A stretch of 36,193 nt of DNA from Octopus bimaculoides (Eukaryota). Shown piece after piece: positions 3,150 to 36,193 of this stretch. The number at the start of each line of letters is the position of its first letter. Positions within the stretch are counted from its first letter, which is position 1. The notes under the pieces were generated by a model. That model searched no databases. It saw only the letters and a list, made by a program, of their open reading frames with translations, and was not told where the DNA came from. Both the position numbers and the translations under genes were made by a program. The stretch covers positions 137,556,822 through 137,593,014 of the forward strand of contig NC_068983.1 in NCBI RefSeq assembly GCF_001194135.2, given 5' to 3'.

Positions 3150-3400
3150 GATTGTTACCAGCATCGCCTTCCTGGCACTTGTGCTGGTGGCATGTAAAAA
3201 GTCATTCGAGCGAGATCGTTGCCAGTGCTGCTTGACTGGCTCCTGTGTAGGTGGCATGTAAAATACACCATTTTGAGCGTGGCCGTTGCCAGCACCACCT
3301 GGCTGGCCTTTGTGCCGGTGGCACGTAAAAGCACCCACTACACTCTCGGAGTGGTTGGCGTTAGGAAAGGCATCCAGCTGTAGAAACTATGCCAAATCAG
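3150..3400 (+). mobile_element. RTE-LINE 3' UTR fragment with about three ~63-bp units
   Basis: ccagtgc..gactggctcctgtg..ggtggcatgtaaaa units followed by ctctcggagtggttggcgttagg. Confidence 0.75.
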
Positions 3401-3717
3401 ACTGCGAGTCAGCATATACGACGTGAAATCGCAAGTAACGTGGCAAATTTATAATCGTGTTCGAAGGGTCCTAATCCCTTACATTGCCTTTATAAAGAGC
3501 AATATTGTGCAAAGTGAAGACGATACACTAATATTTCAGATGGAATCTTGATATAAATACAAGTTTTCTGTAGACATAATTAGGAAAGAATTATTGGTAT
3601 GATTCGTTGTTTGTAACATTGAAAAGATATTGCACAAATTTTTTTTTTAGATATCTAGAAAATGTGTGTCAATGTTCTCTGATAATAGGAAATTTTTTTT
3701 TCTAGTGTTATGAAATT

Positions 3718-6700
3718 ATGCGTCCCAAACGATCGTCACTGAGCAGTCTCACCAAAGAAGCTAGGAGGGCAAGAGAAAAACGGAAAAGGGAAACCACAGA
3801 AGAAAGGCAATTAAGATTAGAAAATCACAGGCAAAGACAATTGGCTCGTCAGCAGACAGAAACAGCAGAAGAAAGGCAGGCAAGATTAGAAGCTAAGAAA
3901 CAGAGGACAAGAGCTTATCGTGCAGCTCTCAAGGTAGGTGTCAGGTATACATTCTTAAGCATCACACACCTATAGGAGAAATATAACAAAGGTCAGCTTA
4001 CAGAATTTATTTGCAAGGTCATTGATATTAAAATTTATTTCAGAGAGCAAGGATGTATGTAGAATAAATGTATTAAGAAGCTTTGTGATAAGAAGTTTCT
4101 TGTGATGTCAACTTTTAGTATTGCAGCCTCTCCACAATTTTCGTTAAGAATGAGCTCAACAAAATACTTTGCAACCTTCAGTCATACTTTGCAACCTTCC
4201 TTGAATCTCCATGTCAGGTATAGGAGCTGTGCAATTGATAAACATCGGTGGGCAAGCCAAGTAACTTACCATGCTCTGTACTTCATTATCTGGTATTATC
4301 AGCAACACAGAAATACGCACCTGCAATACAATATCATGTACACTATACATTGTTGAGGGATCACTATCCATATAAATTGAGTATAATTTTGGAATCAATA
4401 TACGTGATCAAAATACAAGTTTAATGAAGCTACTGTTAAATCAATGGTAGATTCAATCAGGAATTACAATTTTGAAAAATTTTCTGAAGAAAATCTACCA
4501 GAGAACGTCTGTGTGAATTGTAGCAGCAGTTACTATACATTTGATGTTGAAGACAAATTATAACAATCTACCATCATGTGAGATTTCAGAATAGGATACG
4601 TATAACATGTAGCTTCATTTTCATTTCAGTTTCGGAATTCTATTGGGATTCTCTGTTCAGATTGATTTTGAATGCTACATATTGCTATATACTTATGTGA
4701 CTGACAGATTCCATTTTGTATCTTTTTATTTCTTTCTTTGATTATGCCTCACTTCCTCAACACTCAGATGAAAATGATGCAGCAAAAAAAGAACGAAATA
4801 CAGCACCTTGGGGAGCAACACTTGAAGAAGCAACACCAGAATCAAATGTTAAAAAATCAACAATCACATGACAGATGGTATGTGGTGACTAAAATGGTAT
4901 TTTGACAATGTTATTGTGTTACTATTTTTCTTACATATTTCTTCTGAATTAATTGCAAATTTTCATTTTAGGCAAATGGACAGTGCTTTATCATCTCCAA
5001 AGACTTCAAAATGTGTACATCTAACTACTAAAATGCCAGTCCAGCAAGATTCAAGTTTAGCACAAGCATCGCAAAATATTACAAAGCCAGCCCAGGTGTT
5101 GGCTTCACCATTTCAAATAACTCCATCCAAATCAAATCTGGTGAAAAATCCAAATCAAACAACCGTATCTAAATCAATAATTAGAAAAAAAGATTTACCG
5201 AAACAAAAATTGCTAGTTACTAGTCATCAACGTAATGTCATGTCTAACCTAGCATCATTGTGGAGAAGTAGAAAATTTTGTGATGCCTGTATTACCAATG
5301 GCTCATCTACTGTAATGGTAAGTATACAGTTGTAAACTTTTTCATATTTATAAACTGTTTCTATTGTCATCATCATGATAACTAAAAAATCTTGCTTGTA
5401 AGTCTAAAAATTTATGCATAATTTCTAATGTGCTTAATATCAAGATATTCTCCCTCTATATTTCTCAAAGGTAGGTGTAGCCTTTAGTTTTAAGTATTAT
5501 TATTATCAGAAAATTCTACGATTCCGTCATTGAAAATAACTTTTTCTGAAACATTTGCTTATTAATATAGAATAGAACATTTTACAGAAAAAGAAAATGG
5601 AGTTGATTTAATTAAGGTATTAATGAAATAACTCTCTGAGATAAGTGGCTTGAGACTTTTGGGAGTGAATAGGTTTTGTAGAAGATGGAGAAAGATACAC
5701 TTACATTTTTCTACTTTATAAACATGTTTCTTAAATGTCTATCATTGTATTGTTGGCAAGCTATAAATATACTGTTATTATTTACTATATTTCAGGTCCA
5801 TAAAATAGTCTTGTCTGCTGTGTCTCCAAAATTATTATTATTAATTAGTACACACATCTCAACTCAGTTTTATGAAGTAAAATTTCCTGAAGTAAGCACA
5901 GAAACTTTAATGGCTTTTGTTGAATACATGTATACTGGACTATTAGATCTTGATCTTAATATTTTACAACAGCTAAAAGTCATTGCAAAACAATTAGACA
6001 TGAAAGACTTACAAAATATATGTGATGTACATCTTTTACGTGGAGCACGTCAGCAACTTTCTTCAACAGTGACTGCGTTTGATGATCCCAGGCAGATGCC
6101 ATCTGATGTTTCAGCTGTTCCGACAGAGGATATTAAACAGGAGATTTCTCAAAATGAATCAGCAGAACTTAAAGAAGATGAGGTTAGCATCTTTGAGCAA
6201 GAGGTTGAGGCTGCATCTTCGGACACTAAGGATAGCAGCTCTTCAGTTAGTTCTCTTATTCTTCCTACTGTAAAAATAGAGCCTGTAGGACCTGATGACG
6301 ACAAATATGGTCAAATGAATAAAAGGGCTTCAACATCTTGTTCAGTTTCAGATAGTTCTCAGGCACTAAACACTCCTTTGAATTCTATAGCTGTGTCCAC
6401 TACAGATTTTAGCTTACCGTTTTCAGATACCACAAACAGCAAAGCAACTGCAAATAAGATACGTGGAACATCACCTAAATTAAAATCTAACGAAGTTGAA
6501 AGTTCTCCAGTTTCTGACTCATCTCCTTTGTCATATCGTGAAGAAAAACTGTGTTCTCAATCTAGACTCATAAGAGAAGACCCTTCTAAACCACTAAATC
6601 GAACAATAACAACTCAGACAATTGACAACAATGAGATTTGTGGTAGCAATGAAGGTGTCTATCCTGTAGGACTTTTTACAGCAGGAGGGGACAGATTACC

Positions 6701-6767
6701 ATTATCATCAACAGAAGTTACCAATGTCAAAATTACAGGTTTATATAAAACAGATGGTCTTACTTGA
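3718..6767 (+). CDS. STPR-like repeat + BTB/POZ protein, copy 1; join(3718..3933,4768..4877,4972..5317,5796..6767), 547 aa
   Basis: Splice sites AAG|gtaggt 3934, ctcag|ATG 4768, TG|gtatgt 4878, tttag|G 4972, ATG|gtaagt 5318, ttcag|GTC 5796. Phases 0/2/0 join in frame (1644 nt). BTB motif H..VM..L..LW...FCDA..VHKIVLSA.SP..EYMYTG.L.L..A.QL.M..L..IC. Two 23-aa repeats at 3790-3927. AATAAA at 6834. The gene model is well supported; the STPR label rests on recalled similarity. Confidence 0.85.
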
Positions 6768-6833: not shown

Positions 6834-6839
6834 AATAAA
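6834..6839 (+). terminator. Candidate polyadenylation signal AATAAA (paralogous sites at 16329-16334 and 27531-27536)
   Basis: Conserved about 60-70 nt after the stop codon in all three complete terminal exons. Confidence 0.55.
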
Positions 6840-7100
6840 TAATTTTTGAAATACTAGCCTTGTTTTATTTTCTAATGAAAAATACAGTAGAGTTTTCTAT
6901 CTTGTAAAAAATTGTTGATAAATTTCAGTATTGTCTACATAAACTTGTTTTTTGTTGACTATTGCTGCTAGATGTAACCTGTTGCTATCCTCATTTATTA
7001 CCTTTGTACTACTAGGAGTTGGGTGATTGAACAATAGCAGTGGCGGTAGCAGTGCTGCTCCCTTGAAGTCACCAAAGATGTGATCTAAGCATTGTAGAAT

Positions 7101-8830
7101 TGTTGCACACGCTACCAGAGCCTCTGCCAACTTGCCCTCCTTGTCACCCAAGGTCATCCTCAAACTTGACCTTAAGAATGCCTTCAACTCCATCAGCCAC
7201 AATGCTGTCCTCAGCTCAGTGAGAGAGAAGGTCCCACAACTCTACCGCTTTGCGTAGCAGTCTTACTGGGAGTCCTATCTCTTTTTCGGTGACCATATCA
7301 TCACGTCCACCTCAGGCAGGGTGACCCACTCAAGCCCACTCTGTTTACACTGGGCATTGATGACATCACCAAGATGGGGATCGAGCTAGACCTCAATGCC
7401 TGGTATCTCAATGATGCTTGTTTGGGGGACCTCCTGACAGGATTTTTGCCATTGCTAACATGACAGCTGGGGAGCTTGGTCACTGGGGTCTCCAAGTAAA
7501 CAGCTCCAAATGTGAGCTCTGGATCCTCAACCACCTGGGTTCTCAAACATAACCAACTATTGACCTTTTTGCAGAGTCCTTTCTTTCCATTGCAGTACCA
7601 TCACCATTGGCTTGGTGATCCCTAGGAGCCCCAATCACTGACCTTGCCTTTGAGTCCATCTTCCAGTTGAAGGTGGCTGCCCTTGAGCAATTGTTGACAG
7701 ATATTGAAGCTGTTGAACCCCACCAAGGTCTTTTCATACTTAGGAATTACCTCTTGATCCCTAAGCTTCTATATTTACTCAGAGTTAGCTCATCTTACCG
7801 ATTCCCATCATGCCTCTAGTGCTTCAACAAACTAATTTTTGAGAGACTTGAATGCTTAGTCAATGTCAGACTCTCTACAATGTCCCATGATCAGGCTGCA
7901 TTGCCCAAGCATTTTGGAGGTCTTGGTCTTCGTAACTGTTTGTCCCTTTCTCTCCCCTGCTTCCTTTCCTCACCCTGGTGAGCAACATCCTGTCCTTTTC
8001 AACATGGACCAGTTCCAACAGAGAGTTGGATGAAGTTCAACAATAGAGGGAATTTGGCTTGTCTGCTCCTGAGAAGGTAGATGACTGTCAGAGTCAGAGA
8101 GCTTTGGACAACTTAATTTCAAAAGCCAACTTTGACTCCCTCTTCAACAAGTTGGACCAGGTTTCAAGGTGCCACTTACTGTCTGCTAGTGCCAAATACT
8201 CAGGTGACTGGATTGATTGTGAATAATGTTGGTGGCCTACTCAGCTTAGATGAACTTCATGTCTCCATTGCCCTCAGAGTGGGAGCTGACATATGCACAG
8301 GTTTGATCTGTTGTGGCCTGTAGAGTTGACTTCACAGGCCTCCATGGCCTTTCTTGCCACCTGAATGCTGGTCGCTTCATGCATCATATGGAGTTGAACT
8401 TGATGCTCAAGAGGAGCTTGGGAAGGGACGTGACGGTCTCACCCTGTGCCTCTGGTCGCAAAGCAGATGCCTTGTCTGGGATGTCACAGTTAGCGACTCC
8501 TTTGCTTCTCAAATCCTGGATGCTGTGGTAAGGTCGAGATCCACAGCTTCAGCGGCCAAGTGGAACAAAATCCTGAAATACCACAATTTGTCGACCAACT
8601 ACGTTTCCCATATTGTGGTGTTCGAGAGGTTTGGTGGGGGTCGCACCACTAACTGCAAGATACCTGTTTTCACTGGCAACTCGCCTTGCAGAGGTGACTG
8701 TTGAAGCTTGTGAGAGCACGTAGCTGTTCCAGAGCATCAGCCTTGCCATTACCCATGGCAACGTTGCTGCTGTGCTGGCATGCCTCAATAGCCATTCGAG
8801 AGGTTTCCCAGCATCCCAACGTTTCAACCC
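7101..8830 (+). mobile_element. Decayed non-LTR retrotransposon, CRE-like clade (RT, Cys/His knuckle, restriction-like endonuclease)
   Basis: Translates with stops and frameshifts as AHATR..KVILKLDLKNAFNSI..GDPLKPTLFTLGIDD..NAWYLND (RT), then CCGL..DFTGLHGLSCH (knuckle), DGLTLCLWSQSRCLVWDVTVSDSFAS (RLE) and ISLAITHGNVAAVL (C-terminus). Confidence 0.85.
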
Positions 8831-9212
8831 AAGGTGGTGAATTGTTTTTCTTTTTTCTTTCTCTTTTTTTTCCTTTTATCTCATAAATTTTTTCAATTGT
8901 ATTCTCTGTTAAATTGTCCAATTTGTAGTTTAATTTTGCTCCGATTGCGTTCAATTTTGGTGTATCACTGCAACTCTGAATTTTGATTACGATCAACCAA
9001 TTACTTTATCTAGTAAATTAAAGAATCTAATGTTATTTGGAATTAAAGTTGGGAAATTTGGGTAATTTTAGCCAATCAACAGACAGTGTTGCATTAGCAA
9101 ACAGCACGCTGTGATGTGGTTCACTGTTGTTTGTGCTCTAATATAATAAAACACTAATACAATAAAACAATAATAAAATAAAAAATTCTGCGTTGAAGAA
9201 AAAAAAAAAATC

Positions 9213-9655
9213 AAGAGAGTTATCGAACCTGGAGGCTCTGGAAACGAACTTTTCATCTACTGTTGAACCTTCTCTTGTAAGTTTGATTTGTTTCCATCAC
9301 TTTGCTATTATGAAACACTCGAAAATCGTCTAATGTGGTTCTATTATTTTCACATCGTAAATATTATAATTCTTATGTTTCTTCCTGATTACCCATATTG
9401 TTTTTTTTGTGATGAATGGTCAATCATGCCTGCCGTCCTTTAGTGAATAATATTTGTATCACGTAACTATCTTCTACATATATGTGATGCTATATCTTAA
9501 TTAAATATAATGCATAGAAAATCTAGAAAAACAGATACTTATTGCTTTTAGCGAATTCAGAATTTGAATTCCTTAACTAAAGGATACATCTAAAATGAAA
9601 TATCGTAAAAATATCCAATTGTCTTTGTGGTAAATAAAAAAATTGATATTTCTAC
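9213..9655 (+). promoter_or_regulatory. Conserved upstream non-coding block with candidate 5' UTR exon and donor at 9277 (paralogues ~21926-22420 and ~33188-33930)
   Basis: aagagagttatcgaacctg..ctc.ggaaacgaa..ccttctc is followed by gtaagt, gtaaga or gttagt upstream of copies 2, 3 and 4. Function is inferred only. Confidence 0.45.
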
Positions 9656-10696: not shown

Positions 10697-11878
10697 TATG
10701 TCAGACAACAGGAGGCACAGATCAATTGGTGGAGGCAGAGGACCAGAAAATGAAGATCTAGAGATTGAACTCTTACAGTGGATTGTTGTTTAGCGTGCAA
10801 ACAATGTAATTGTAAATTATCGCCATTTACGGGAATATGCTTTTGAATTGGTAAAAAGGTTTGGAATTGGAATGAACAGCTTTAGATGTTCTGATAAATG
10901 GATTTTCAATTTCATGAAACAGAATAATCTGACTGTGAGAAAGATTACACATGTTGGTCAAGCAGACAATAAAAACACTTGGAGAAAAGGCACAAATCAC
11001 CAGTGACTATCTAGATAGTATTCCAATGTTAACAACAGATAAGGATGCTAACCATATTTATAATATGGATGAAACACCTGTATATGTTGACATGTTGAGT
11101 TCAACAACCATAGACTTTGTTGGCAATAAAAATGTAGATGCTAGCCCCTGTGGTGCTACCAAAGCTCGTTTTACTACTGTGTTGTTTGTTAATGCTGCAG
11201 GAAAGGTGTTGAAAACGATGATTACCCTTAAAGGATTGAAAAACGTGCCTAAAATCAACGTCGTAAAGAATATTTACTTAACAGTCTCCAACAGAGGATC
11301 AATCACATATGAACTCATGCAGCTGTGGGCTGACAAAGTGTTTGGGCAGAGAACAGCACAACTATCCCATGCTCAAAATTCAGTGCTATTCATGGACGAA
11401 TGCTCAGTGCATGAGAAAACAGAGCTGCTAGAAGTGTTCAAACGTAGGAATACAATTCTCAAACTTATACCTCCTAAAACAACATCTTACTTGCAGCCGT
11501 TAGATGTATCAATTATTGGTCCATTCAAGAAAGCCCTTCGTGCAGAATGGGATAATTAGTTTTTCAAATGACAAAAAGGAGTATACAAATAAAGAATATT
11601 GCAAAAGACCCTAACAAGAGATAGTGAACTTTGTGGCTCAAGCTGTTGCCACTTTAAATAAAGAAACTATAAAGCATGCTTTTGAATGTTGTGGAATTGC
11701 TCCTCGTGGACAGACTGTAGAACATAGCCTCTTAAACTCATGCTTACAGGATGTTTTGTCTGGCCTTGAGGTAAATGCGCCAGATGCACAAAATGATAAA
11801 ATTGAAGATGAGATACAAGTGAAATTAGCACATGTGAATTATGACCAAGTAACAAATGAAGAAATTTGTGATATTTAA
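10697..11878 (+). mobile_element. pogo/Tigger-like DDE transposase pseudogene (CENP-B-type HTH + DDE_1)
   Basis: LEIELLQWI..FRCSDKWIFNFMKQNNLTVRKIT (HTH), a frameshift, then IYNMDETPVY..RFTTVL..VLFMDECSVH..IPPKTTSYLQPLDVSIIGPFKKALR..AFECCGI. Internal stops are present. TIRs not confidently located. Confidence 0.9.
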
Positions 11879-13086: not shown

Positions 13087-16000
13087 ATGCGTACCAAACG
13101 ATCATCACTGGGCCGTCTCACCATACATGGAAAGAAGACAAGAGAAAGACGGAAAAGGGAAACCACAGAAGAAAGGCAATTAAGATTACGAAATCATAGG
13201 GAAAGACAATCTGCTGCTCGACAGGCAGAAACAGCAGAAGAAAGGCAGGCAAGATTAGAAACTCAGAAACAGAGGGCAAGAACTCGTCGTGCAGCTCTCA
13301 AGGTAGGTGTCAGGTATACATTCTTAAGCGTCACACACCTATAGGAGAAATATAACAAAGATCAGCTTACAGAATTTATTTGCAAGGTCATTGATATTGA
13401 AATTTATTTCAGAGAGCAAGGATGTATGTAGAATAAATGTATTAAGAAGGTTCATGATATGAAGTTTCTTATGATGTCAACTTTTAGTATTGCAGCCTCT
13501 CCACAAATTTCATTAAAAATGAGCTCAATAAAATCATGAATTAAGGCTCAGTCATACTTTGCAACCTTCCTTGAATCTCCATGTCAGGTTTAGGAGCTGT
13601 GCAATTGATAAACATTAGTTGGCAAGCCAAGTACCTTACCATGCTCCATACTTCATTACCTGGTATTATCAGCAACACAGAAATACGCACCTGTAATAAA
13701 TTGAGTAGAACTTCAGAATCAATGTATGTGATAAAAATACTACTTTAAAGAAGCTACTGTTAAATCAATTGTAAATTCAATCAGGAATTACAACGTTGAA
13801 AAATTTTCTGCAGAAAATCTACCAGAGAACGTCTGTGTGAATTGTGGCAGCAGTCACTATATATTTGATGTTGAAGACAAATTACAACAGTTTACCACCA
13901 TGTCAGATTTCAGAATAGAATAAGTATAACATGCAGCTGCATTCTCATTTCAGTTTTGGAATTCTGTAGAGATTCTCTGTTCAGGTTGATTTTGAATGCT
14001 TTTGGGGATTTACCATATACTCATGTGGCTGACAGATTCCATTTTTTCTTAGTGGATTCAATGTGGGAATTCAAATATTTGTTAGTCTTACAAACAAGAA
14101 TTTTTAGTTATCATTGACATTTGCATTAGCCTAAATTATTCATTCATCACAGTCCAAATTATTTCCATTGAACTGAAATCTTTATTCTTTTATCTTTTTA
14201 TTTCTTTCTTTGATTATGCCCCACTTCCTCAANNNNNNNNNNNNNNNNNNNNNNNNNNNNNNNNNNNNNNNNNNNNNNNNNNNNNNNNNNNNNNNNNNNN
14301 NNNNNNNNNNNNNNNNNNNNNNNNNNNNNNNNNNNNNNNNNNNNNNNNNNNNNNNNNNNNNNNNNNNNNNNNNNNNNNNNNNNNNNNNNNNNNNNNNNNN
14401 NNNNNNNNNNNNNNNNNNNNNNNNNNNNNNNNNNNNNNNNNNNNNNNNNNNNNNNNNNNNNNNNNNNNNNNNNNNNNNNNNNNNNNNNNNNNNNNNNNNN
14501 NNNNNNNNNNNNNNNNNNNNNNNNNNNNNNNNNNNNNNNNNNNNNNNNNNNNNNNNNNNNNNNNNNNNNNNNNNNNNNNNNNNNNNNNNNNNNNNNNNNN
14601 NNNNNNNNNNNNNNNNNNNNNNNNNNNNNNNNNNNNNNNNNNNNNNNNNNNNNNNNNNNNNNNNNNNNNNNNNNNNNNNNNNNNNNNNNNNNNNNNNNNN
14701 NNNNNNNNNNNNNNNNNNNNNNNNNNNNNNNNNNNNNNNNNNNNNATTATGTGATGCCAGTATTAGCAATGGCTCATCTACTGTGATGGTAAGTATACAG
14801 TTGTAAACGTTTTCACATCTATAGACTGTTCCTAATGTCATCATCATAACTAAAAAATCTTGCTTGTAAGTCTAAAAATTTATGCATAATTTCTAATGTG
14901 CTTAATATCAAGATATTCTTTCTTCTACTTCCCTCTATATTTCTCAAAGGTAGGTGTAGCCTTTAGTTTTAAGTATTATTATTATCAGAAAATTCTACGA
15001 TTCCGTCATTGAAAATAACTTTTTCTGAAACATTTGCTTATTAATATAGAAGAGAATATTTTACAGAAAAAGAAAATGGAGTTGATTTAATTAGGGTATT
15101 AATGAAATAACTCTTTGAGATAAGTGAAGTTTAAATCAACTTTCAGTGGCTTAAGACTTTTGGGAGTGAATAGGTTTTGTAGAAGATGGAGAAAGATAAA
15201 CTTACATTTTTCTACTTTATAAACATATTTCTTAAATGTCTATCATTGTATTGTTGGCAAGCTATAAATATACTGTTATTATTTACTATATTTCAGGTCC
15301 ATAAAATAGTCTTGTCTGCTGCATCTCCAAAATTGTTATCACTAATTAGTACACACATCTCTTCTCAGTTTTATGAAGTAAAATTTCCTGAAGTAAGCAC
15401 AGAAGCTTTAATGGCTTTTGTTGAATACATGTATACTGGACTATTAGATCTTGATCTTAATATTTTACAACAGCTAAAAGTCATTGCAAAACAATTAGAC
15501 ATGAAAGACTTACAAAATATATGTGATGTTCATCTTTTACGTGGAGCACGTCAGCAACTTGCTTCAACAGTGACTGTGTTTGATGATCCCAGGCAGATGC
15601 CATCTGATGTTTCAGCTGTTCCGACAGAGGATATTAAACAGGAGATTTCTCAAAATGAATCAGCAGAACTTAAAGAAGATGTGGTTAGCATCTTTGAGCA
15701 AGAGGTTGAGGCTGCATCTTCGGACACTAAGGATAGCAGCTCTTCAGTTAGTTCTCTTATTCTTCCTACTGTAAAAATAGAGCCTGTAGGACCTGATGAC
15801 GACAAATATGGTCAAATGAATAAAAGGGCTTCAACATCTTGTTCAGTTTCAGATAGTTCTCAGGCACTAAACACTCCTTTGAATTCTATAGCTGTGTCCA
15901 CTACAGATTTTAGCTTACCGTTTTCAGATACCACAAACAGCAAAGCAACAGCAAATAAGATACGTGGAACATCACCTAAATTAAAATCTAACGTATTTGA

Positions 16001-16268
16001 AAGTTCTCCAGTTTCTGACTCATCTCCTGTGTCATATCGTGAAGAAAAACTGTGTTCTCAATCTAGACTCATAAGAGAAGACCCTTCTAAACCACAAAAT
16101 CGAACTATAACAACTCAATCAATTGACAACAATGTGACTTATGGTAACACTGAAGGTGTCTATCCTGTAGGACTTTTTACAGCAGCAGGGGACAGATTAC
16201 CATTATCATCAACACAAGTTACCAATGTCAAAAATATAGGTTTATATAAAACAGATGGTCTTACTTGA
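13087..16268 (+). CDS. STPR-like repeat + BTB/POZ protein, copy 2; exon A 13087..13302, exon B and most of exon C in gap 14233-14746, exon C end 14747..14788, exon D 15297..16268
   Basis: Same splice signals as copy 1. All visible exons are open. The 514-N gap matches the 515 nt separating the homologous flanks in copy 1, so the missing exons probably lie in the gap. Confidence 0.75.
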
Positions 16269-16624: not shown

Positions 16625-17017
16625 GGCTGATGCCAGTGCTGCCTGACTGGCACCTGTGCTGGTGGTACATAATAAGCACCATTCAAGTGTGAGTCAATGC
16701 CAATTCCACATGCTCCTTGTGCCGGTGGCTCATAAAAACACCATCCGAATGTGGTTGATGCCAGTGCTTCCCGATTGGCTCCTGTGCCGGTGACACATAA
16801 AAAGTACCATTTGAACATGGTCGATGCTAGTGTTGCCTGACTGGTTACTGTGCTGGTGGCACATTAAAAGCAACTTACAATCTTGGACTGGTTAGTGTTA
16901 GGAAGGGCATTCAGATCAGATTGGAGCCTGGTGCAGCTTACTGGCTTGCCAGTCCTCAGTCAAACTGTCCAACCCATGCCAGCATAGAAAATGGATATTA
17001 ATCAATGATGATGATGA
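16625..17017 (+). mobile_element. RTE-LINE 3' UTR fragment with about four ~63-bp units and a (TGA)n tail
   Basis: Same unit and terminus as 19420-19905. Confidence 0.75.
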
Positions 17018-17700: not shown

Positions 17701-17779
17701 TTGGTGCTGCATTGTTTTTTTGTCTTTTTCCCTCTTTGTTTTTTGTCTTCCTTTTGTAAAATATATTTCTGTGTTGCCT

Positions 17780-18012
17780 GACTGGCTCCCGTGCTGGTAG
17801 CATGTAAAAAGCACCATTTGAGCGTTGTTGATGCCAGTACTGCACGATTGGTCCTACTACACTCTCGGAGTGGTTGGCGTTAGGAAGGGCATCCAGCTGT
17901 AGAAATCTTGCCAGATCAGACTGGAGCCTGGTGCAGCCTTCTGGCTTACCAGTCCCCAGTCAAACTGTCCAACCCATGCCAGCATGGAAAGCAAACGATA
18001 AACGATGATGAT
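17780..18012 (+). mobile_element. RTE-LINE 3' end fragment
   Basis: ctctcggagtggttggcgttaggaagggcatccagctgtagaaa...ccaacccatgccagcatggaaag...gatgatgat. Confidence 0.75.
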
Positions 18013-18479
18013 AATTTTGATTAAACCAAAACAGGAATGGTTGCGTTTAGTCCAAACACTTATTTTCAAATATACTTAGAACTACATTATACAGAGTTAT
18101 ATTCCTTTTAACATGGTAGCATTTCTAATAGGTCGAATAACCATGAAGAGGTTTTTCATTGATTAGCGCATGATTTTACTTTCAGTTAATATTACTTTTG
18201 TTAAAGTAGCCAGCATCTTCCAATAAGATGCAAACATCTTTATATTTAAAAGAAGAAAATATTCCATAATGAAACTAAATCGATGCCATGTGAGCTGTAC
18301 AATGCCATGTGTTTAATGTAAGTATAGAAGAGCAGCTGGAATCGAATTATTGGAAACACTGGATTGAAAGCAATGTTCACCGGAAAGATCACTATTTATT
18401 TGTGTGGGATACCATGTGACAACCCACGTGCTCAACGATTTCCAACGAAACCATCAAAATATCGAACGCATGTGCTTTG

Positions 18480-18959: not shown

Positions 18960-19905
18960 GTTGTGATTGAAGTAGAGGACATGTGTAGGCTTGAAAGAAA
19001 TGAAGCTCGTATGATCTGCTGGATGGGTAATGTAGGTGTAAACGCTCTGAAAGAAAAGTTGGGCATAAGAAGCATCAGATGTGGTGTGCAAGAGAGGCGA
19101 CTGTGCTGTTATGGCCATGTGTTATGTATGAATGAAGACAGCTGTGTGAGGAAGTGCCATTCCCTAACTGTAGAAGGAACTTATGGAAGAGATAGAGCCA
19201 AGAAAACATAGGATGAGGTGGTGAAGCATGACCTTTGAACATTGGGCCTCACAGTGGTGATGACAGGAGACTGGGACCTTTGGAAATATGCTGTGATTGA
19301 GAAGACCCAGCAACTAAAGTGAGATTGAAGCCATGCATGTCCGGCCCTGTTAAGAATACCCCTGATGCATCAAGCGATATGATAGGCTTGAGAAGACCTG
19401 CTGAGTCAAGTAAAGCCAATATCATAGCTGGGACCAGTGCTCTCTGACTGGCTCCCATGTCAGTGGCACGTAAATAGCACCATCCGAACTTGGTCGATGT
19501 CAAGTCTGTCTGACTGGCTCCCATGCCGGTGGCATGTAGAAAGCACCAACTGAACATGGCCAATGCCAGTACCCCCAGACTGGCTCCTGTACTGGTGGCA
19601 GGTAAAAAGCATTGACTGATCGTGGCCAATGCCAGTAGCCCTGATTGGGTCTTATGCCGGTAGCATGTAAAAACACCATCCAAATGTAATTGATGCCAGG
19701 CCCGCGTGACTGGCTTCTGTGCTGGTGGTACATAAAAAGTACCCACTACACTCTTAGAGTGGTTGGTGTTAGGAAGGGCATCCAGCTGTAGAAACATTGC
19801 CAGACCAGATTGGAGTCTAGTGCAGCCACTGGCTCTGCAGACCTCAATCAAATCGTCCAACCCATGCCAGCATAGAAAATGGATGTTAAATGATGATGAT
19901 GATAT
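18960..19905 (+). mobile_element. 5'-truncated RTE-clade LINE: ORF C-terminus, 3' UTR with about five ~65-bp tandem units, (TGA)n tail
   Basis: RLERNEARMICWM..LGIRSIRCGVQERRLCCYGHVLCMNEDSCVRKC..VEGTYGRDRAKKT*DEVVKHDL resembles the RTE RLRWYGHV..GRPRKTW tail. Units at ~19434, 19501, 19567, 19633 and 19696. Confidence 0.85.
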
Positions 19906-21850: not shown

Positions 21851-23678
21851 GCGTTTCTTAGCGGCGATATCATTATCATTGAGGTTTATCCGAGGCTAGT
21901 TGAATAAGCTAATCCATCAATAAGGAAGAGAGTTATCGAACCTGGAGACTCTGGAAACGAATATTTCAGCTATTGTTAGCCCTTCTCTGGTAAGATTAGT
22001 TTGTTTCCACCACTTTGCTAATATGAAATACTCGAAAATCGTTTAATGTGGTTCTTCTATTTTCACATCTTAAATATTATAATTCTTTTGTTTCCTTCTG
22101 GTTACCCATATTGTTTTTTTTGCAATGAATGATTAATCATGCCTGCCGTGCTTTAGTGAATAATATCTTACCAAGTAACCATCTTCTATTTATATATGAT
22201 ATCTGAATTAAATATAATGCATAGAAAATTCAGAAAAACTCAGCATTACGCAAAATATGTTTTAAAAGGCATTAGGAAAGAACAACTCTGTAATCGAATT
22301 GTTTCTTATAACAAACTTTTTGGGAAGTAAATACGAAGTTTTAGGGAAGTTATGAAATATCGTAAAAATACCCAATTGTCTTTGTGCGAAAAAAAAAAAA
22401 TTGACATTTCTACATTTGATATAAGACTACAAATTTGGAATCGAACTCATTACTAATGACTTTTGTTTTCTGTAGCAGAGATAGATATCTGGCCAGGTAT
22501 TGGTGGTGATGGTTTGCACGAATACCCGGCCTTTTCACTCATTCTTCGAAATCTCGCCAAAAACGTTCGATGCTTTTGGTGTGTATGTGTGGTGGTAAAA
22601 TTATTTAGTACTGATATCGAGTCTGGTGTGAAACTATAAATTTACCATCATATTTTATTTAGTTTCTCATGTTGAATCCAGCAAAGAAGCTTTATCATAT
22701 ATAATTTAGGAGTTCAGATTTTGAATCCAATGCAATTCAGCGAATGCAAAATGAAATCGCTAGTAAAATGGCGAATTCATAATAGTCTTTCAAGGGGAGC
22801 TAATCCAATAATATTTGTTGATACCACAATTATCCAAAGAAATAAAAGAACTTGCAAAATCCTGATCGAATTTCACTCCTCCCCATTGTCCTAGAAGTGT
22901 CAAAGATTATCTGGTAATTTAAAAGAAAAAAGATAGCGATTTCTTTAACCATAACTCATTCCATTAGTGAATGAGAGCAGTGCTAAATATGTCATTGTAA
23001 AGGGCTCGCAAGCACTATTTTGAAAAAACCATTATCTCTCTTCATTTTTCTACTCCGTATACCTTGTAACTTATTGGTGAAAGGGCGTATTGTGATTGTG
23101 AGGTCAGGCATTTATAGTTACCTTTGGTGCTTTGGTTGTTTTGTTTATGGCTGAAGATTTGTGTTACAGTTAAATTTCCTTGATATACATGTCTTCGTGA
23201 TTTTGAAAGATAACTCGAGTGTCAAGTACCTATTAAAAGATGCTTACAACATTTATGTTCATAGAAACATGTCTGTCATGAAGTGTTATTAGCCCCTGCT
23301 CACATTGAGCAGACGTAAGTTCAAATATATTCCAGTCTTAGCCAAACCATTTTTCTTTGTAGACATACTGTATCTAAGGACAATTCTTCAAAGTGTTCTT
23401 TTATGATTTTTGAAATACTTTTGACCACAAGGTTATTCAACGAGGGATCACCTGAGGTTTTTATATTGTCAAATAACAATAGGTATGGTGATCTGCATCT
23501 AGAAATTTCTGTTAATCATATCGTCACCACTTTTCCAAAGATTTCATTATGAAATTACACTTAATTTTGATGGTTTCTTTTACTTGCATATAAATATTTA
23601 CTTAAATAAAAATAATTTTAAATCCATTAACATTAAATAATATTTTACTGAACGTTACAGATTCAACCGTTCTTAAAA

Positions 23679-26600
23679 ATGGAAGAGAGAATAAGTCAAC
23701 AAAGAGCGGCAGCAAGAGAGAGACAGAGAAGACGACGACAGCGGTTATCATCCGAAGAGAGGCAAGCAGTCCGTGAACGTATTCGAGAACGTATGCAAAA
23801 AATGAGGAGTAATATGAACGAAGAGGAGAGAGAACTTTATCTTCAGAATAGGAGAAACAGGGATCGAGAAAGAAGAAGTAATATGGATCAAGATGAGAGA
23901 GAACTTTATCTTCAGAATAAAAGAAACAAAGATCAGGAGAGAAGAAATAACATGAATCCTGAGGAGAGAGAAACTTATCTACAGAATATGAGAAATAGAG
24001 TTCAAAAGCGAAGAAATGCCATAAATGAAGATCAACAAAATGAAGTTATGCATCCCAAACTATCGTCACTGGGCCGTCTCACCAAACATGCTAGGAAGGT
24101 AAGAGAAAGACAGAAAAGGGAAACCACGGAAGAAAAACAATTAAGATTACAAAACCAGAGGCAAAGACAATTTGCTAGTCAGCAGGCAGAAACAGCGGAA
24201 CAAAGGCAGGCAAGATTGGAAGCTCAGAAACAGAGGACAAATACTTATCGTACAAGTCTCAAGGTAAATATCAGGTATACATTTTTAAGCATCACACACC
24301 TATAGAGGAAATATAACAAAGATCTGCTTATAGAATTTATTTGTGAGGTCATTGATATTGCAATTAATTTCAGAGACCAAGGATATATGTAGGATGAATG
24401 TATTAAGAAGCTTCATAACATGAGGTTTCTTGTGATGCAAACTTTTAGTACTGCAGCCTCTCCAAAATTTTCATTAAAAATGAGCTCAATAAAATTATGA
24501 ATTAAAGCTCAGTCATACTTTGTATGCTTCCTTGAATCTCCATGTCAGGGTTAGTAGCTGTGCAATTGATAAACATCAGTGGGCAAGCCAAGTAACTTAG
24601 TGTGCTCAGTACTTCATTATCTGGTATTATCGGCAACACAGAAATACGCACATGTAATAAAGTATCATGTATGCTATACAGTGTTGAGGGATCACTATCA
24701 ATTATAAATTGAGTAGAACTTTGGAATCAATGTATGTGATAAAAATCCAAATTTAATGAAGCTGCTGTCATGTCAATTGTAAATTCAATCAGGAATTACA
24801 ATGTTGAAAAATTTTCTGAAGAGAATCTACAAGAGAAAGTCTGTGTGAATTGTGGCAGCAGTTACTATATATTTGATGTTGAAGACAAATTACAACAGTC
24901 TACCATCATGTCAGATTTCAAAATAGGATAAGTATAACATCCAGCTCCATTCTCGTTTCAGTTTTGGAATTCTGTAGAGATTCTCTGTTGAGGTTGATTT
25001 TGAATGCTTTTTCTTTAGTGAAAGTTTCAGTGTGGAAATTAAGCATTATGTGTTAGCCTTACAAACAAGAATTTTTAGTTATCATTGACATTTTCATTAA
25101 AATAACTTATCAATTCGTCACAGTCTAAATTATTTCCATTGAACTGAAATCTTTATTTGTATCTTTTTATTTCTTTCTTTGATCATGCCTCACTTCCTCA
25201 ACACTCAGATGAAAATGACACAGAAAAAAAAGAATGAAACACAGCACCTTGGGGAGCAACACCTGCAGAATCAAAAGTTTAAAAATCAACAATCACATGA
25301 CAGATGGTATGTGATGACTAAAATGGTATTTTGACAATGTTATTGAGTTACTATTCTTCTTATATATTTCTTCTGAATTAATTGCAAATTGTCATTTTAG
25401 GCAAATGGACAGTGCTTTATCATTTCCAAAGACTTCAAAATGTGTACATCTAACTACTAAAATGCCAGTCCAGCAAGATTCAAGTTTAGCCCAAGCATCG
25501 CAAAATATTACAAAGCCAGCTCAGGTGTTGACTTCACCATTTCAAATAACTCCATCCAAATCAAAGCTGATGAAAAATCCAAATCAAACAACTGTATCTA
25601 AATCAATAATTAGAGAAAAAGATTTACCGAAACAAAAATTGCTAGTTACTAGCCATCAACATTATGTTATGTCTAACCTAGCATCCATGTGGAGAAATAG
25701 GAAATTATGTGATGCCAGTATTAGCAATGGCTCATCTACTGTGATGGTAAGTATACAGTTGTAAACGTTTTCACATCTATAGACTGTTCCTAATGTCATC
25801 ATCATGATAACTACAAAATCTTGCTTGTAAGTCTAAAAAATTATGCTTAATTTCTAATGTGCTTAATATCAAGCTATTCTTTCTTCTACACCCCTCTATA
25901 TTTCTTAAAGATAGGTCTAGTTGACGTGTATGTTCTTACTGGTGCAATTCTTAGATAAATCTGTTGTTTTATAATTAATTGGTCATAAAATCTTTTATNN
26001 NNNNNNNNNNNNNNNNNNNNNNNNNNNNNNNNNNNNNNNNNNNNNNNNNNNNNNNNNNNNNNNNNNNNNNNNNNNNNNNNNNNNNNNNNNNNNNNNNNNN
26101 NNNNNNNNNNNNNNNNNNNNNNNNNNNNNNNNNNNNNNNNNNNNNNNNNNNNNNNNNNNNNNNNNNNNNTATAGATAAATTTTTTATTAAGTTTTAAGTT
26201 TTATTATTATCAGAAAATTTTATGATTCAGTCATTGAAATACACTAGAATATTTTACAGAAAAAGATAATGGAGTTTATTTAATTAAAGTATTAATGAAA
26301 TAACTCTCTGAGATAAATGAAGTTTAAACTAACTTTCAGTGGCTTAAGACTTGGTTAGTCAATAGCTTTTGTAAAAGTTGGAAAAACATAAACTTACATT
26401 TTTCTACTTTATGAACATGTTTCTTAAATATCTATCATTGTATTGTTGGCAAGCTATAAACGTACTGTTTATTATTTACTATATTTCAGGTCCATAAAAT
26501 AGTCTTGTCTGCTGTGTCTCCAAAACTGTTCTCAGTGTTTAGTACACACATCTCTTCTCAGGTGTTTGAAGTAAAATTTCCTGAAGTAGTTAGTACAGAA

Positions 26601-27464
26601 GCTTTAATGGTTTTTGCTGAATACATGTATACTGGACTATTAGATCTTGATCTTAATATTTTACAACAGCTAAAAGTCATTGCAAAACAATTAGACACGA
26701 AAGACTTAGAAAATCTGTGTGATGCTCATCTTCTAAGTGGAGCAAGTCAGCAACTTGCTTCGACAGTTACTGCATTTGATGATCCCAGGCAGATGCCATC
26801 TGATGTTTCAGCTGTTCCTACAGAGGATATTAAACAAGAGATTTCTCAAAACGAATTAGCACAACTTAAAGAAGGTACAGTTAGAACCTTTAAGCGAGAG
26901 TTTGATGCTGCATCTCTGGACTCTAAGAGTGGCAACTCTCCAGTTGGTTCTGTTATTCTTCCCAGTGTAAAAATGGAGCCTGTAGGACCTGATGATGACA
27001 AATATGGTCAAATGAATGAAAGAGCTTACACATCTTGTTCAGTTTCAAATAGTTCTGAGACTCTAAAAACTACTTTGAATTCTATAGTTGTGTCCACTAC
27101 AGATTTTAGCTTACCGTTTTCAGATACCACAAACAGCAAAGCAACAGCAAACAAGATACATGGAACATCACCTAAATTAAAATCTAATGTATTTGAACGT
27201 TCTCCAGTTTCTGACTCATCTCCTGTGTCATATCGTGAAGAAAAACTGTGTTCTCAATCTAGACTCATAAGAGAAGACCCTTCTAAACCACTAAATCGAA
27301 CAATAACAACTCAGACAATTGACAACAATGAGATTTGTGGTAGCAATGAAGATGTCTATCCTGTAGGACTTTTTACAGCAGGAGGGGACAGATTATCATT
27401 ATCATCAACACAAGTTACCAATGTCAAAAATACAGGTTTATATAAAACAGATGGTCTTACTTGA
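23679..27464 (+). CDS. STPR-like repeat + BTB/POZ protein, copy 3 with an expanded repeat exon; join(23679..24263,25209..25306,25401..25746,26490..27464), 667 aa
   Basis: Phases 0/2/0 join in frame (2004 nt). Donors gtaaat, gtatgt, gtaagt. Four extra 23-aa repeats at 23745-24020 plus the two shared repeats from 24120. BTB motif intact. Confidence 0.85.
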
Positions 27465-30008: not shown

Positions 30009-31025
30009 AGTATCCATACAAAAATTTTTATTGCCAAGGGAGTAAGAAATTGGATAGAGCAATATGCATATTACATTACATTTTTGGTTGCTAATTTGAT
30101 TTATAAATTACTGGTGCATTAACTGTAACACAGGATTGAATCTAATCTCATTGATCTCTCTTTCTCTTTGTCCATGAAGATGATGCATGTAGAGACAAGT
30201 TATTTACATCTGTCTATAGCAGTGTTAGTTAAATATCTGTAGATATGATTTGTAGTTCAGAACAGTAATTAATGTTTAGTAGCACATGCCTTGGAAAATA
30301 TTTTTTTTTTGTGTGAGATATGATACCTGTGTTACTAAATATTCGCTCTCGGGTAAGACCAGTATGTGTGTCCATTTAAGGTATTCATGATGATTCTTAG
30401 AAATTTGAAATATCATTGCATTGGAGTTTGCCTTTTAGCTCCAGGTCGGCTCTGGTTCAACAGACCTATTGAACAAAAGCATTCTATTCCTTCCTAATAT
30501 CTTCTTTTTTAGGGATAATATACATCCTGGATGCTCTGGTAAATGGGAGGGTCACTGCTTTTGTAGCTGAATGGAACAAAAGTATCCTGAAGTATTGGGA
30601 TCTTCCAGCATGTGGTGTTTGAGGCATTTTGAGGTACTGGCCACTAATGGAGAAGTTCTTGTGATCATTGGCAGCTTAGTGTCAAGTGATGCCTGTGAGG
30701 GTGCTTGGCTTTTCCAACACCTTAGCCTTATCATCACCCATGGTAATGCCGTGAGTGTTTGCCTGCTTTAGTAGGTCCTGTTGAACCTTGTGGTGTGCGA
30801 TCAATTGATGCACTTGGTGTTGCATTGTATTATTTGTCTTTCTCCCTCTTTTATCCTTTTTGTTTGTTTTTCTTTTGTAAAATATATTCCTGTATTGCCT
30901 GACTGGCTCTTGTGCTGGCGGCACATAAAAAGTATCATTCAAGCATGGTCAATGCCAGTACTGACTGATTGGCCCTTGTGCTGGTGGCATGTAAAAAGCA
31001 CCCACTACACTCTCGGAGTGGTTCC
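30009..31025. repeat. Intergenic segment paralogous to ~17021-17860, including the CRE relic and RTE 3' units
   Basis: agtatccatacaaaaattt..gcaatatgcatattaca..ctctggttcaacagacctattga is shared by both segments. Confidence 0.8.
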
Positions 31026-34498: not shown

Positions 34499-36193
34499 AT
34501 GCCTCCCAAAATATCATCACTGGGCCGTCTCACCAGGAATGCTATGAGGGTAAAGGAAATACGGAAAAACGAAACCACAGAAGAAAGGCAATTAAGATTA
34601 GAAAATCATAGGGAAAAACAGTTTGCTAGACGGCGGACAGAAACAGCAGAACAAAGGCAGGCAAGATTAGAAGCTCGGAAACAGAGCACATATAATTATC
34701 GTACAAATCGCAAGGTAGATATCAGGTATACATTCTTAACCATCACACACCTATAGGAGAAATATAACAAAGTTGTGATATCAACTTTTAGTATTGCAGC
34801 CTCTCCACAATTTTCATTAAAAATGAGCTCAACAAAATTATGAATTAAAGCTCAGTCATACTTTGTATGCTTCCTTGAATCTCCATGTCAGGGTTTGTAG
34901 CTGTGCAATTGATAAACATCAGTGGGCAAGCCAAGTAACTTAGTGTGCTCAGTACTTCATTATCTGGTATTATCTGCAACACAGAAATACGCACATGTAA
35001 TAAAGTATCATGTATGCTATACAGTGTTGAGGGATCACTATCAATTATAAATTGAGTAGAACTTTGGAATCAATGTATGTGATAAAAATCCAAATTTAAT
35101 GAAGCTGCTGTCATGTCAATTGTAAATTCAATCAGGAATTACAATGTTGAAAAATTTTCTGAAGAGAATCTACCAGAGAAAGTCTGTGTGAATTGTGGCA
35201 GCAGNNNNNNNNNNNNNNNNNNNNNNNNNNNNNNNNNNNNNNNNNNNNNNNNNNNNNNNNNNNNNNNNNNNNNNNNNNNNNNNNNNNNNNNNNNNNNNNN
35301 NNNNNNNNNNNNNNNNNNNNNNNNNNNNNNNNNNNNNNNNNNNNNNNNNNNNNNNNNNNNNNNNNNNNNNNNNNNNNNNNNNNNNNNNNNNNNNNNNNNN
35401 NNNNNNNNNNNNNNNNNNNNNNNNNNNNNNNNNNATGTTGAAGACAAATTACAACAGTCTACCATCATGTCAGATTTCAGAATAGGATAAGTATAACATC
35501 CAGCTCCATTCTCGTTTCAGTTTTGGAATTCTGTAGAGATTCTCTGTTCAGGATGATTTTGAATGCTATATATTGCTATATACTTATGTGACTGACAGAC
35601 TCCATTTTTTCTTAGTGGATTCAATGTGGGAATTCAAATATTTGTTAGTCTTACAAACAAGAATTTTTAGTTATCATTGACATTTGCATTAGCCTAAATT
35701 ATTCATTCATCACAGTCCAAATTATTTTCATTGAATTGAAATCTTTATTCTTTTATCTTTTTATTTCTTTCTTTGATCATGCCTCACTTCCTCAACACTC
35801 AGATGAAAATGATACAGAAAAAAAAGAACGAAATACAGCAACACTTAAAGAAGCAACACCAGAATCAAATGTTAAAAAATCAACAATCACATGACAGATG
35901 GTATGTGGTGACTAAAATGGTATTTTGACAATACTATTGAGTTACTATTCTTCTCTTCTGTATATTTCTTCTGAATTAATTGCAAATTTTCATTTTAGGC
36001 AAATGGACAGTGCTTTATCATCTCCAAAGACTTCAAAATGTGTACATCTAACTACTAAAATGCCAGTCCAGCAAGATTCAAGTTTAGCACAAGCATCGCA
36101 AAATATTACAAAGCCAGCTCAGGTGTTGGCATCACCATTTCAAATAACTCCATCCAAATCAAATCTGGTGAAAAATCCAAATCAAACAACCGT
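34499..36193 (+). CDS. STPR-like repeat + BTB/POZ protein, copy 4, 3'-partial; exons 34499..34714, 35803..35900, 35999..>36193
   Basis: Acceptor tctag at 34486. AAG|gtagat, ctcag|ATG, TG|gtatgt, tttag|G. All exons open and homologous to copies 1-3. The BTB part lies beyond the window. Confidence 0.8.

Follow-up and report, generated by a model that had tools for sequence, protein, structure and literature searches.

Tandem octopod BTB genes with STPR-type repeats in a first exon of probable Helitron origin

A 36,193-nucleotide (nt) stretch of the Octopus bimaculoides genome (contig NC_068983.1, positions 137,556,822 to 137,593,014 of the forward strand; "the window", whose own positions are used below) contains short open reading frames (ORFs) rich in charged residues together with ORFs that encode a BTB domain. 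A sequence-only reading had proposed that these ORFs were spliced into BTB proteins with N-terminal STPR-like repeats and without zinc fingers, which raised the questions of whether the window encodes such proteins, where the repeats came from, and what they could do in front of a BTB domain. The analysis made it probable that the window holds four tandem, octopod-specific nuclear BTB proteins whose variable DNA-binding part is N-terminal, encoded by the first exon and derived from a transposon, this first exon (exon A) having been domesticated from a Helitron.

The window was AT-rich, intron-bearing chromosomal DNA with runs of N. Comparison of the window with itself revealed four tandem paralogues in units of ~10 kb each, and the homology between the units spanned from ~90-240 bp 5' of exon A to ~330 bp 3' of the stop codon. 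All of the exons described here were on the plus strand. In copy 1, which mapped to chromosome CM046603.1 at ~137.56 Mb (NCBI assembly GCA_001194135.2), exon A (3718-3933, 72 codons) encoded a basic leader, MRPKRSSLSSLTKEARRAREKRKR, followed by two STPR-type repeats of 23 amino acids (aa), and ended at a GT donor at 3934. Exon B (4768-4877) encoded a Q/K-rich helical linker, exon C (4972-5317) a low-complexity linker and, from nt 5258, the start of the BTB domain, and exon D (5796-6767) the remainder of this domain, which ended at nt 6035, then a tail rich in acidic residues and Ser, a C-terminal motif and the stop codon. All AG/GT borders were canonical and the phases were compatible, which yielded a 547-aa ORF with a single terminal stop. 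Copy 2 contained an exon A homologue (13087-13302) followed by a GT donor and exon D (15297-16268), while its exon B and most of its exon C were lost in an assembly gap (~14230-14745). The ORF of copy 3 started at 23679 with an in-frame N-terminal extension of 123 codons (23679-24047) found in this copy only; it ran into the exon A core (24048-24263, homologous to 3718-3933, GT donor after) and was joined in the splice model to exons B, C and D at 25209-25306, 25401-25746 and 26490-27464. Copy 4 showed an exon A homologue (34499-34714) with a GT donor and, by homology, exon B (35803-35900) and exon C (from 35999), the latter cut by the end of the window. The spliced product of copy 1 matched the database protein P0001 with 100% identity and coverage, and the annotation of the NCBI assembly independently had an identical 547-aa BTB gene at the same position. 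The 667-aa product of copy 3 was identical to P0006 (XP_014782229.1) at 662 of 667 residues. At the level of predicted products, the claims that the charged ORFs splice in phase with the BTB ORFs into one protein, and that this protein joins STPR-like repeats to a BTB domain, were thus confirmed. The gene models were already in the public annotation, without a description; the nearest named relatives were O. bimaculoides, O. sinensis and O. vulgaris proteins called "uncharacterized" or automatically named "transcription factor Ken-like", and the orthologues of O. sinensis and O. vulgaris shared this gene structure.

Some details around the start of these genes were observed separately. The public annotation range of the 667-aa gene began near window position 9333 (L002:15616) and so overlapped copy 2; the annotation may have fused copies 2 and 3 into a single gene, or copy 2 may contribute its exon A as an alternative first exon. 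A polypyrimidine tract with an AG (ttttttttctag, window 3702-3717) ended 12 nt 5' of the exon A ATG, in frame, and in P0002, an upstream paralogue, a THAP exon was joined a few codons ahead of the Met equivalent to that of exon A. Because of this in-frame acceptor-like AG and the THAP junction of P0002, exon A may serve as an internal exon too. An out-of-frame ATG at 3710-3712, 8 nt 5' of the start codon, opened a 10-codon upstream ORF that overlapped the start.

In the published definition of the STPR domain, each repeat is strictly 23 residues long and Glu1, Thr/Ser2 and Arg9 are conserved (PMC4856987). The exact 23-aa period that had been read from exon A held: repeat 1 occupied aa 25-47 (3790-3858, ETTEERQLRLENHRQRQLARQQT) and repeat 2 aa 48-70 (3859-3927, ETAEERQARLEAKKQRTRAYRAA), both read from the sequence. 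Each of the four copies and the orthologues had exactly this spacing from E25 to E48, and the relatives were likewise spaced by 23 residues. The octopus repeats retained E1, T2, E4, R6, R9 and L10, and repeat 1 also R20. In the exon-A alignment (A1), E25, E48, T49 and R33 were invariant, residue 26 was T or S, and R56 was present in every sequence that covered it. Searched directly, the Pfam STPRs model (PF21107) scored 21.8 bits for copy 4 (E=2.6e-4) and 17.8 bits for copy 2 (E=4.5e-3), values that reach significance when a single protein is compared with a single library; two repeats span only ~46 of the 74 positions of the model. A profile of exon A built from nine sequences was searched against 1.84 billion representative proteins and gave 110 matches at E<=1e-3. 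PF21107 was found in 77 of the 107 matches that were scanned (best E=4e-29), and none of these 107 representative matches had a BTB domain. Word-indexed protein searches returned three matches with exon A of copy 3 and one with the exon-A profile. Tandem Repeats Finder did not detect the two ET repeats, which were too diverged at the DNA level, and it detected the 69-nt repeat of copy 3. By sequence, we place exon A in the STPR family as a minimal, divergent version with two repeats.

The structural predictions for exon A were examined as well. AlphaFold was run on the 547-aa protein with an alignment of 16 sequences; the mean predicted local distance difference test score (pLDDT) was 41, and the model was unreliable for the BTB domain and the tail. 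Within aa 11-114 (pLDDT 68-87), helices were predicted at aa 13-23, 27-46 and 50-114, with breaks exactly at the E1-T2 dipeptides, so that the helix of repeat 1 began at repeat residue 3. A generic coiled coil was considered and set aside, as the repeats had, by eye, few hydrophobic residues and no evident heptad pattern. A phmmer search of exon A against PDB chains returned only weak matches to rat RAP (E=1.2) and to Helraiser residues 4-112 (E=2.8), which serve as a lead and not as evidence.

The sequence-only reading had placed exon A beside the host genes FMBP-1 and ZNF821. This kinship was not upheld; the profile matches, the leader and the relics near the locus pointed instead to the N-terminal module of a Helitron transposase. 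A leader of the form MPPK(K/R)..(L/I)GR.T was present in 50 of 106 profile matches, followed by a basic stretch and a first ET repeat near residue 25. Exon A of octopus had the same layout (MRPKRSSLSSLTK.., MPPKISSLGRLTR..), with a MPPKRSSLGR-type leader and the first repeat at residue 25. The Helitron C..C..CC..G motif occurred in 15 profile matches, others carried Helitron_like_N, PIF1, Pif1_2B or DUF6570, and the named matches included spider proteins labelled "ATP-dependent DNA helicase". STPRs are stably included in the HLE1 Helitrons according to a survey of Helitron-like elements (PMC11417382). In O. sinensis, the orthologue was flanked by Helitron relics 4 kb upstream and 9 kb downstream (L001:5852-7431 and 22539-23620), which contained the leader, degenerate repeats, a Zn-finger-like motif and Helitron_like_N. 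Like the Rep/Hel protein of HLE1, exon A placed its repeats at the start of the ORF behind a Met-Pro-Pro-Lys-Arg..Leu-Gly-Arg..Thr leader, with the first ET repeat near residue 25; unlike it, octopus kept the first 72 codons only, after which a splice donor joined host exons. Nothing Helitron-like was found after codon 72, intron 1 included, when the window was searched with Helitron proteins by tblastn, and the window genes had no Zn-finger-like motif, HUH Rep nuclease or PIF1-type helicase of a Helitron Rep/Hel protein. Because only the leader and the repeats remain, the exon A region would be a derived Helitron fragment and not a transposase. Exon A thus appears to correspond to the N-terminal module of a Helitron transposase, encoded by the opening 72 codons of its ORF.

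The downstream half of the protein was assigned with more familiar tools. The BTB domain of copy 1 (Pfam PF00651) was found at aa 205-304 with E=5.5e-14 and 52.7 bits (cut-off 20.5), covering model positions 4-106 of 110, and BTB chains in PDB matched it down to E=7e-8. The best of these matches included the Cul3 adaptors IVNS1ABP, KLHL3, gigaxonin and SPOP, and the BTB domains of the transcription factors CP190, BCL6, Miz1, PLZF and ZBTB8A scored about equally. The Pfam scan of the copy 1 protein found only this BTB match, with no zinc finger or other DNA-binding family. In the tail, the motifs IKQE (6132-6143) and VKIEP (6270-6281) were invariant; both are of the psi-K-x-E type with acidic residues after them and are candidate SUMO-type sites. 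Exon D ended with the conserved motif VYPVGLF..LYKTDGLT and the stop, and all relatives, including the distant paralogues and Argonauta, terminated in ..VYPVGLFTAGGD.LPL....V.NVK...LYKTDGLT followed by a stop. A poly(A) signal (AATAAA, 6834-6839), read from the sequence, was located 67 nt 3' of the stop codon of copy 1. Because of this common C-terminal motif, the stop and the AATAAA, exon D is the last exon and no zinc-finger exons follow it, so the absence of zinc fingers, including C2H2 fingers added by downstream exons, was substantiated.

The arrangement with the DNA-binding part in front of the BTB domain was not confined to the window. A paralogue, LOC106877732 in O. bimaculoides and LOC115209932 in O. 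sinensis, shared 53% identity across the BTB domain and tail, and its locus was located upstream of the STPR-BTB array, ~110 kb away and in the same orientation. Its many predicted isoforms varied only at the N-terminus, where a THAP, FLYWCH, CENP-B_N+HTH_Tnp_Tc5, DUF3504 or C2H2-like exon preceded one constant BTB domain and tail. In the 60-kb O. sinensis locus (L003:2968-63248), at least 14 plus-strand domain ORFs were found upstream of two common BTB exons: five THAP ORFs, three DUF3504/QRICH1 ORFs, ORFs with DUF4817, HTH_psq, HTH_29 and CENP-B_N + HTH_Tc5, one weakly matching zf-C17orf113, and a C2H2-like ORF with no Pfam match. The gene next upstream of the window (P0002) combined THAP, a partial STPR and BTB. 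Each window gene had one exon A and a relic of another first exon; by tblastn, the relic in intron 1 of copy 1 (4408-4757, plus strand) was homologous to the N-terminal exon of the paralogue isoform P0013, and P0013-type relics were found in the other copies at 13735-13890, 24743-25005 and 35086-35564. Combinations of THAP-BTB and CENPB-BTB in Octopus were noted by Mukherjee and Moroz in 2023 (PMC10027918). The reversed domain order read from the window was therefore real as an architecture, with STPR repeats N-terminal of BTB, but it was not unique to this gene: an N-terminal DNA-binding module with a C-terminal BTB is the rule of the octopod gene family. The paralogues with THAP, FLYWCH, CENP-B-N, HTH_Tc5 or DUF3504 at the same place strongly suggest a DNA-binding role for the N-terminal position.

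One further ORF of the O. sinensis locus looked like STPR (L003:44511-44801, MGRPKKYATDEERRAAKALRERARRERETAEKRSRRLEKMRSSALRRRQ.., then a GTAAAA donor-like site; no Pfam match). It resembled a leader with one STPR-like repeat that, like FMBP-1, had M13 and A17, and no isoform using it was seen among the predicted ones.

Copy 3 appeared to have acquired more of the same kind of material. Its homology to copy 1 began at 24040, 8 nt 5' of the shared ATG, and the extension ahead of it contained four 23-aa MNxEERExYLQN repeats, encoded by the 69-nt tandem repeat at 23810-24031. These extra repeats had no PF21107 match and lacked Glu1 and Arg9. The extension was 78% identical to the O. bimaculoides protein P0028, which continues into a Helitron N-terminal region, and it was 92% identical in the O. 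vulgaris orthologue, above the conservation of the tail. The N-terminus of the extension resembled the start of Helraiser, a weak match (E=2.8) that is a lead only. Judged by these similarities, the extension is another Helitron N-terminal module, of a second type, gained in frame upstream of exon A. A protein of the mantis shrimp Oratosquilla oratoria (P0027, 331 aa) began with a MEER..QQR.AARERQRRRR.RL and MNxEER-repeat module, 61% identical to the octopus module, followed by an HMG box; the Helitron N-terminal module may have been fused to a host gene here too, or that Helitron family may have spread horizontally.

The pattern of substitution was used to identify which parts of exon A are constrained. 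When copy 1 was compared with its O. sinensis orthologue over exon A, the nonsynonymous rate (dN) was 0.043 and the synonymous rate (dS) 0.113 (dN/dS 0.38), and the nucleotide identity was 94% versus ~86% in the flanking intron. Between the paralogues, repeat positions 1-10 had a dN of 0.025 and a dS of 0.216 (dN/dS 0.12), repeat positions 11-23 a dN of 0.313 and a dS of 0.157 (dN/dS 2.0), and the leader a dN of 0.252 and a dS of 0.144. The nonsynonymous contrast between the two halves of the repeat was significant in six of the six paralogue pairs (Fisher, p = 9e-6 to 0.02). The aligned codons thus indicate a conserved scaffold half and a base-facing half whose divergence equals or exceeds the neutral rate, a pattern that fits diversifying recognition.

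From these features we infer that the proteins are nuclear, bind DNA, oligomerise and have a regulatory output, and a working model can be outlined. In the STPR of FMBP-1, phosphate contacts are made by Arg6, Arg9, Leu10, Tyr16 and Arg20, and contacts to the methyl groups of thymine by Met13, Ser14, Ala17 and Leu21 (PMC4856987). A hyper-basic region together with the STPR domain acts as a nuclear localisation signal in FMBP-1 and ZNF821 (PMC4821344); the 24-residue basic leader of octopus is probably such a signal, and leader and repeats together would give nuclear import. Exon A would be spliced through the helical Q/K-rich linker to the BTB domain and the acidic tail with its SUMO-type motifs. 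Each repeat would place one helix in the major groove of DNA, with the conserved first halves (E1, T2, E4, R6, R9, L10) holding the scaffold and the phosphate contacts and the variable second halves, which differ between the paralogues, facing the bases. In FMBP-1, the fourth repeat is needed for stable chromatin binding (PMC4821344), and three repeats are enough in vitro. The two octopus repeats would supply only two helices, probably too few for stable binding, so that pairing through BTB is probably required and would assemble four or more. The tail may recruit partner proteins for the regulation of transcription or chromatin. The N-terminal region of the Helitron protein is needed for DNA binding (PMC4778049), and since the octopus module stems from this DNA-binding N-terminus, the binding of Helitron-derived sequences is an attractive possibility; the regulation might take place at Helitron-derived sites.

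Several observations weighed against this reading. No copy reached the PF21107 gathering threshold of 27 bits, and copies 1 and 3 as well as the full proteins had no match reported. Three to seven tandem repeats, usually four, are expected of an STPR domain, and the ET type has only two; a truncated FMBP-1 with three repeats no longer binds chromatin stably (PMC4821344), and exon A has one fewer. Among the PDB chains searched by phmmer with exon A, the STPR structure of FMBP-1 was not recovered. The identification as STPR was therefore upheld by the profile and by the defining Glu1, Thr2 and Arg9, but not by the direct Pfam score or by the number of repeats. The thymine-contact residues M13, S14, A17 and L21 of BmSTPR were replaced in octopus by H/K, R/K, Q/T and Q/R, and because of this replacement the AT-rich specificity of BmSTPR is not transferable to octopus. 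The BTB domain was not confidently modelled (AlphaFold pLDDT <50), so no oligomeric class was drawn. Over the whole of exon A, dN/dS between the four paralogues was 0.75-2.1, about neutral; an excess of dN over dS was not significant on its own (p = 0.018 to 0.35), and a relaxed constraint outside the ten scaffold positions fits the divergence too. The gene models themselves are predictions, from sequence and annotation.

Alternatively, exon A could be only a nuclear localisation signal with a charged helical spacer, through which no DNA sequence is read; the function of the protein would then reside in the BTB domain and the tail, for example as a cofactor that other proteins recruit. The localisation activity of the hyper-basic region and STPR in FMBP-1 and ZNF821 (PMC4821344), the presence of only two repeats, the Pfam scores under threshold and the free variation of the leader and of repeat positions 11-23 between paralogues were all consistent with this explanation. 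However, positions 1-10 were under strong purifying selection (dN/dS 0.12), a constraint not required of a plain basic localisation signal, recognised DNA-binding domains occupied the same position in the paralogues, and copy 3 had acquired four extra repeats that were 92% conserved in O. vulgaris. A mere spacer is unlikely for these reasons. The proteins could also be Cullin-3 substrate adaptors for protein turnover, with the BTB domain binding Cul3 and the N-terminal helices or the tail binding the substrate. In favour of this role, the best solved BTB matches included IVNS1ABP, KLHL3, gigaxonin and SPOP, but CP190, BCL6, Miz1, PLZF and ZBTB8A matched about as well, the Pfam scan showed no BACK, Kelch or MATH domain, and the N-terminal modules of the family were DNA-binding domains, which made an adaptor role quite improbable. 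That the copies are decaying duplicates or annotation chimeras, with exon A a chance upstream Helitron remnant outside the functional mRNA, would agree with the predicted nature of the models, a paralogue dN/dS near or above 1, the out-of-frame ATG 8 nt 5' of the start codon (3710-3712) and an array full of transposon debris, but it was the least credible explanation, since the exon A ORFs and GT donors were intact in four of four copies, the O. sinensis orthologue had the same structure with a dN/dS of 0.38 and an exon identity above the intron identity, independent annotation yielded the same 547-aa and 667-aa products, and the Helitron sequence past codon 72 was cleanly lost.

The preferred reading, a DNA-binding first exon taken from a Helitron, was compared with known systems. 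Exon A shares with the STPR of FMBP-1 and ZNF821 (PF21107) the strict 23-residue period, Glu1, Thr/Ser2, Glu4, Arg6, Arg9 and Leu10, the basic region directly ahead of the repeats and the predicted helix from repeat residue 3. It differs in having two repeats instead of the usual four, in an N-terminal instead of a C-terminal position, in polar or basic residues at the thymine-contact positions, and in its fusion partner, which is BTB in place of C2H2 fingers or an acidic region. Like the ZBTB/POK factors, the octopus proteins carry a BTB domain of the same Pfam family, resembling BCL6, PLZF, Miz1 and ZBTB8A, but they are without C2H2 fingers and their BTB lies downstream of the putative DNA-binding module. 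As in the host-transposase fusion factors and the THAP-BTB and CENPB-BTB proteins of Octopus (PMC10027918), a transposase DNA-binding module is spliced to a host protein-interaction or effector domain, with lineage-specific tandem expansions. In contrast to the cases in PMC10027918, which makes no mention of Helitrons, the donor here would be a Helitron and the module STPR; BTB was taken there as a transposon component, whereas here it is the host part. No paper was found that combined the STPR phrase with BTB, and STPR and Helitron were found together only in the HELIANO survey and its preprint. The genes would thus encode a host-transposase fusion regulator, or a BTB factor, with an unusual donor (a Helitron) and an unusual locus logic.

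The locus logic recalls the Drosophila BTB loci lola and mod(mdg4), in which common BTB exons are combined with many alternative exons for DNA-binding domains, FLYWCH among them. The octopus paralogous locus appears to combine common BTB exons with putative alternative DNA-binding exons, judged from predicted isoforms and ORFs. Unlike in lola and mod(mdg4), the predicted variable exons of octopus are 5' first exons that encode N-terminal domains, in a mirror-image layout; because they are 5', each would need its own promoter and not an alternative 3' splice or trans-splice. The octopus domains also come from several transposon superfamilies, and the four window genes are duplicated versions with one exon A. 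A bolder proposal, which we hold only tentatively and regard as rather doubtful, is that octopods possess a mirror image of lola and mod(mdg4): a BTB cluster recruiting transposase modules (the Helitron STPR perhaps for the first time, and P-element, pogo, Crypton and FLYWCH-type modules) as alternative first exons, whose STPR-BTB daughters keep the helix scaffold and diversify the base-facing residues. The pattern would fit a family of proteins that follow Helitron-derived sites in the genome and act as repressors or chromatin organisers. If true, this would be an independent, mirror-image reinvention in cephalopods of the one-BTB-many-readers logic of Drosophila. One main way in which new transcription factors arise is by domesticating the DNA-binding domain of a transposase, usually that of a cut-and-paste transposon. 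To our knowledge, no host regulator built from a Helitron protein module has been described. The window genes would be, if the reading is correct, a lineage-specific example of a new regulator assembled from a transposon piece. They would offer a natural test of the DNA binding and the target of the N-terminal STPR repeats of Helitrons, and a case where BTB oligomerisation may compensate for a minimal reader of two helices.

The remaining observations concerned the DNA around the genes. Intron 1 was 98% identical between copies 3 and 4 (24430-24861 versus 34773-35204), whereas their exon A was only ~84-86% identical, which points to either a recent gene conversion ending before exon A or a selection keeping the exons different. 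Transposon debris was present between the tandem units. A pogo/Tigger-like transposase relic was located between copies 1 and 2 (10848-11878, plus strand), with the end of HTH_Tnp_Tc5 followed by DDE_1 (E=1.5e-16). Window positions 7000-8900 contained broken ORFs on both strands, with a weak RVT_1 match (E=0.003) at 7132-7257, and are probably a decayed retroelement just 3' of copy 1. A GC-rich 66-nt tandem repeat was found at 16629-16872 and 19444-19678, with related copies at 2045-2362, 3172-3410, 17771-18018 and 30779-30976. The repeat yielded long PPAQ/WHVK-type ORFs, of which the one tested had no Pfam match, and it was present in the O. sinensis locus too.

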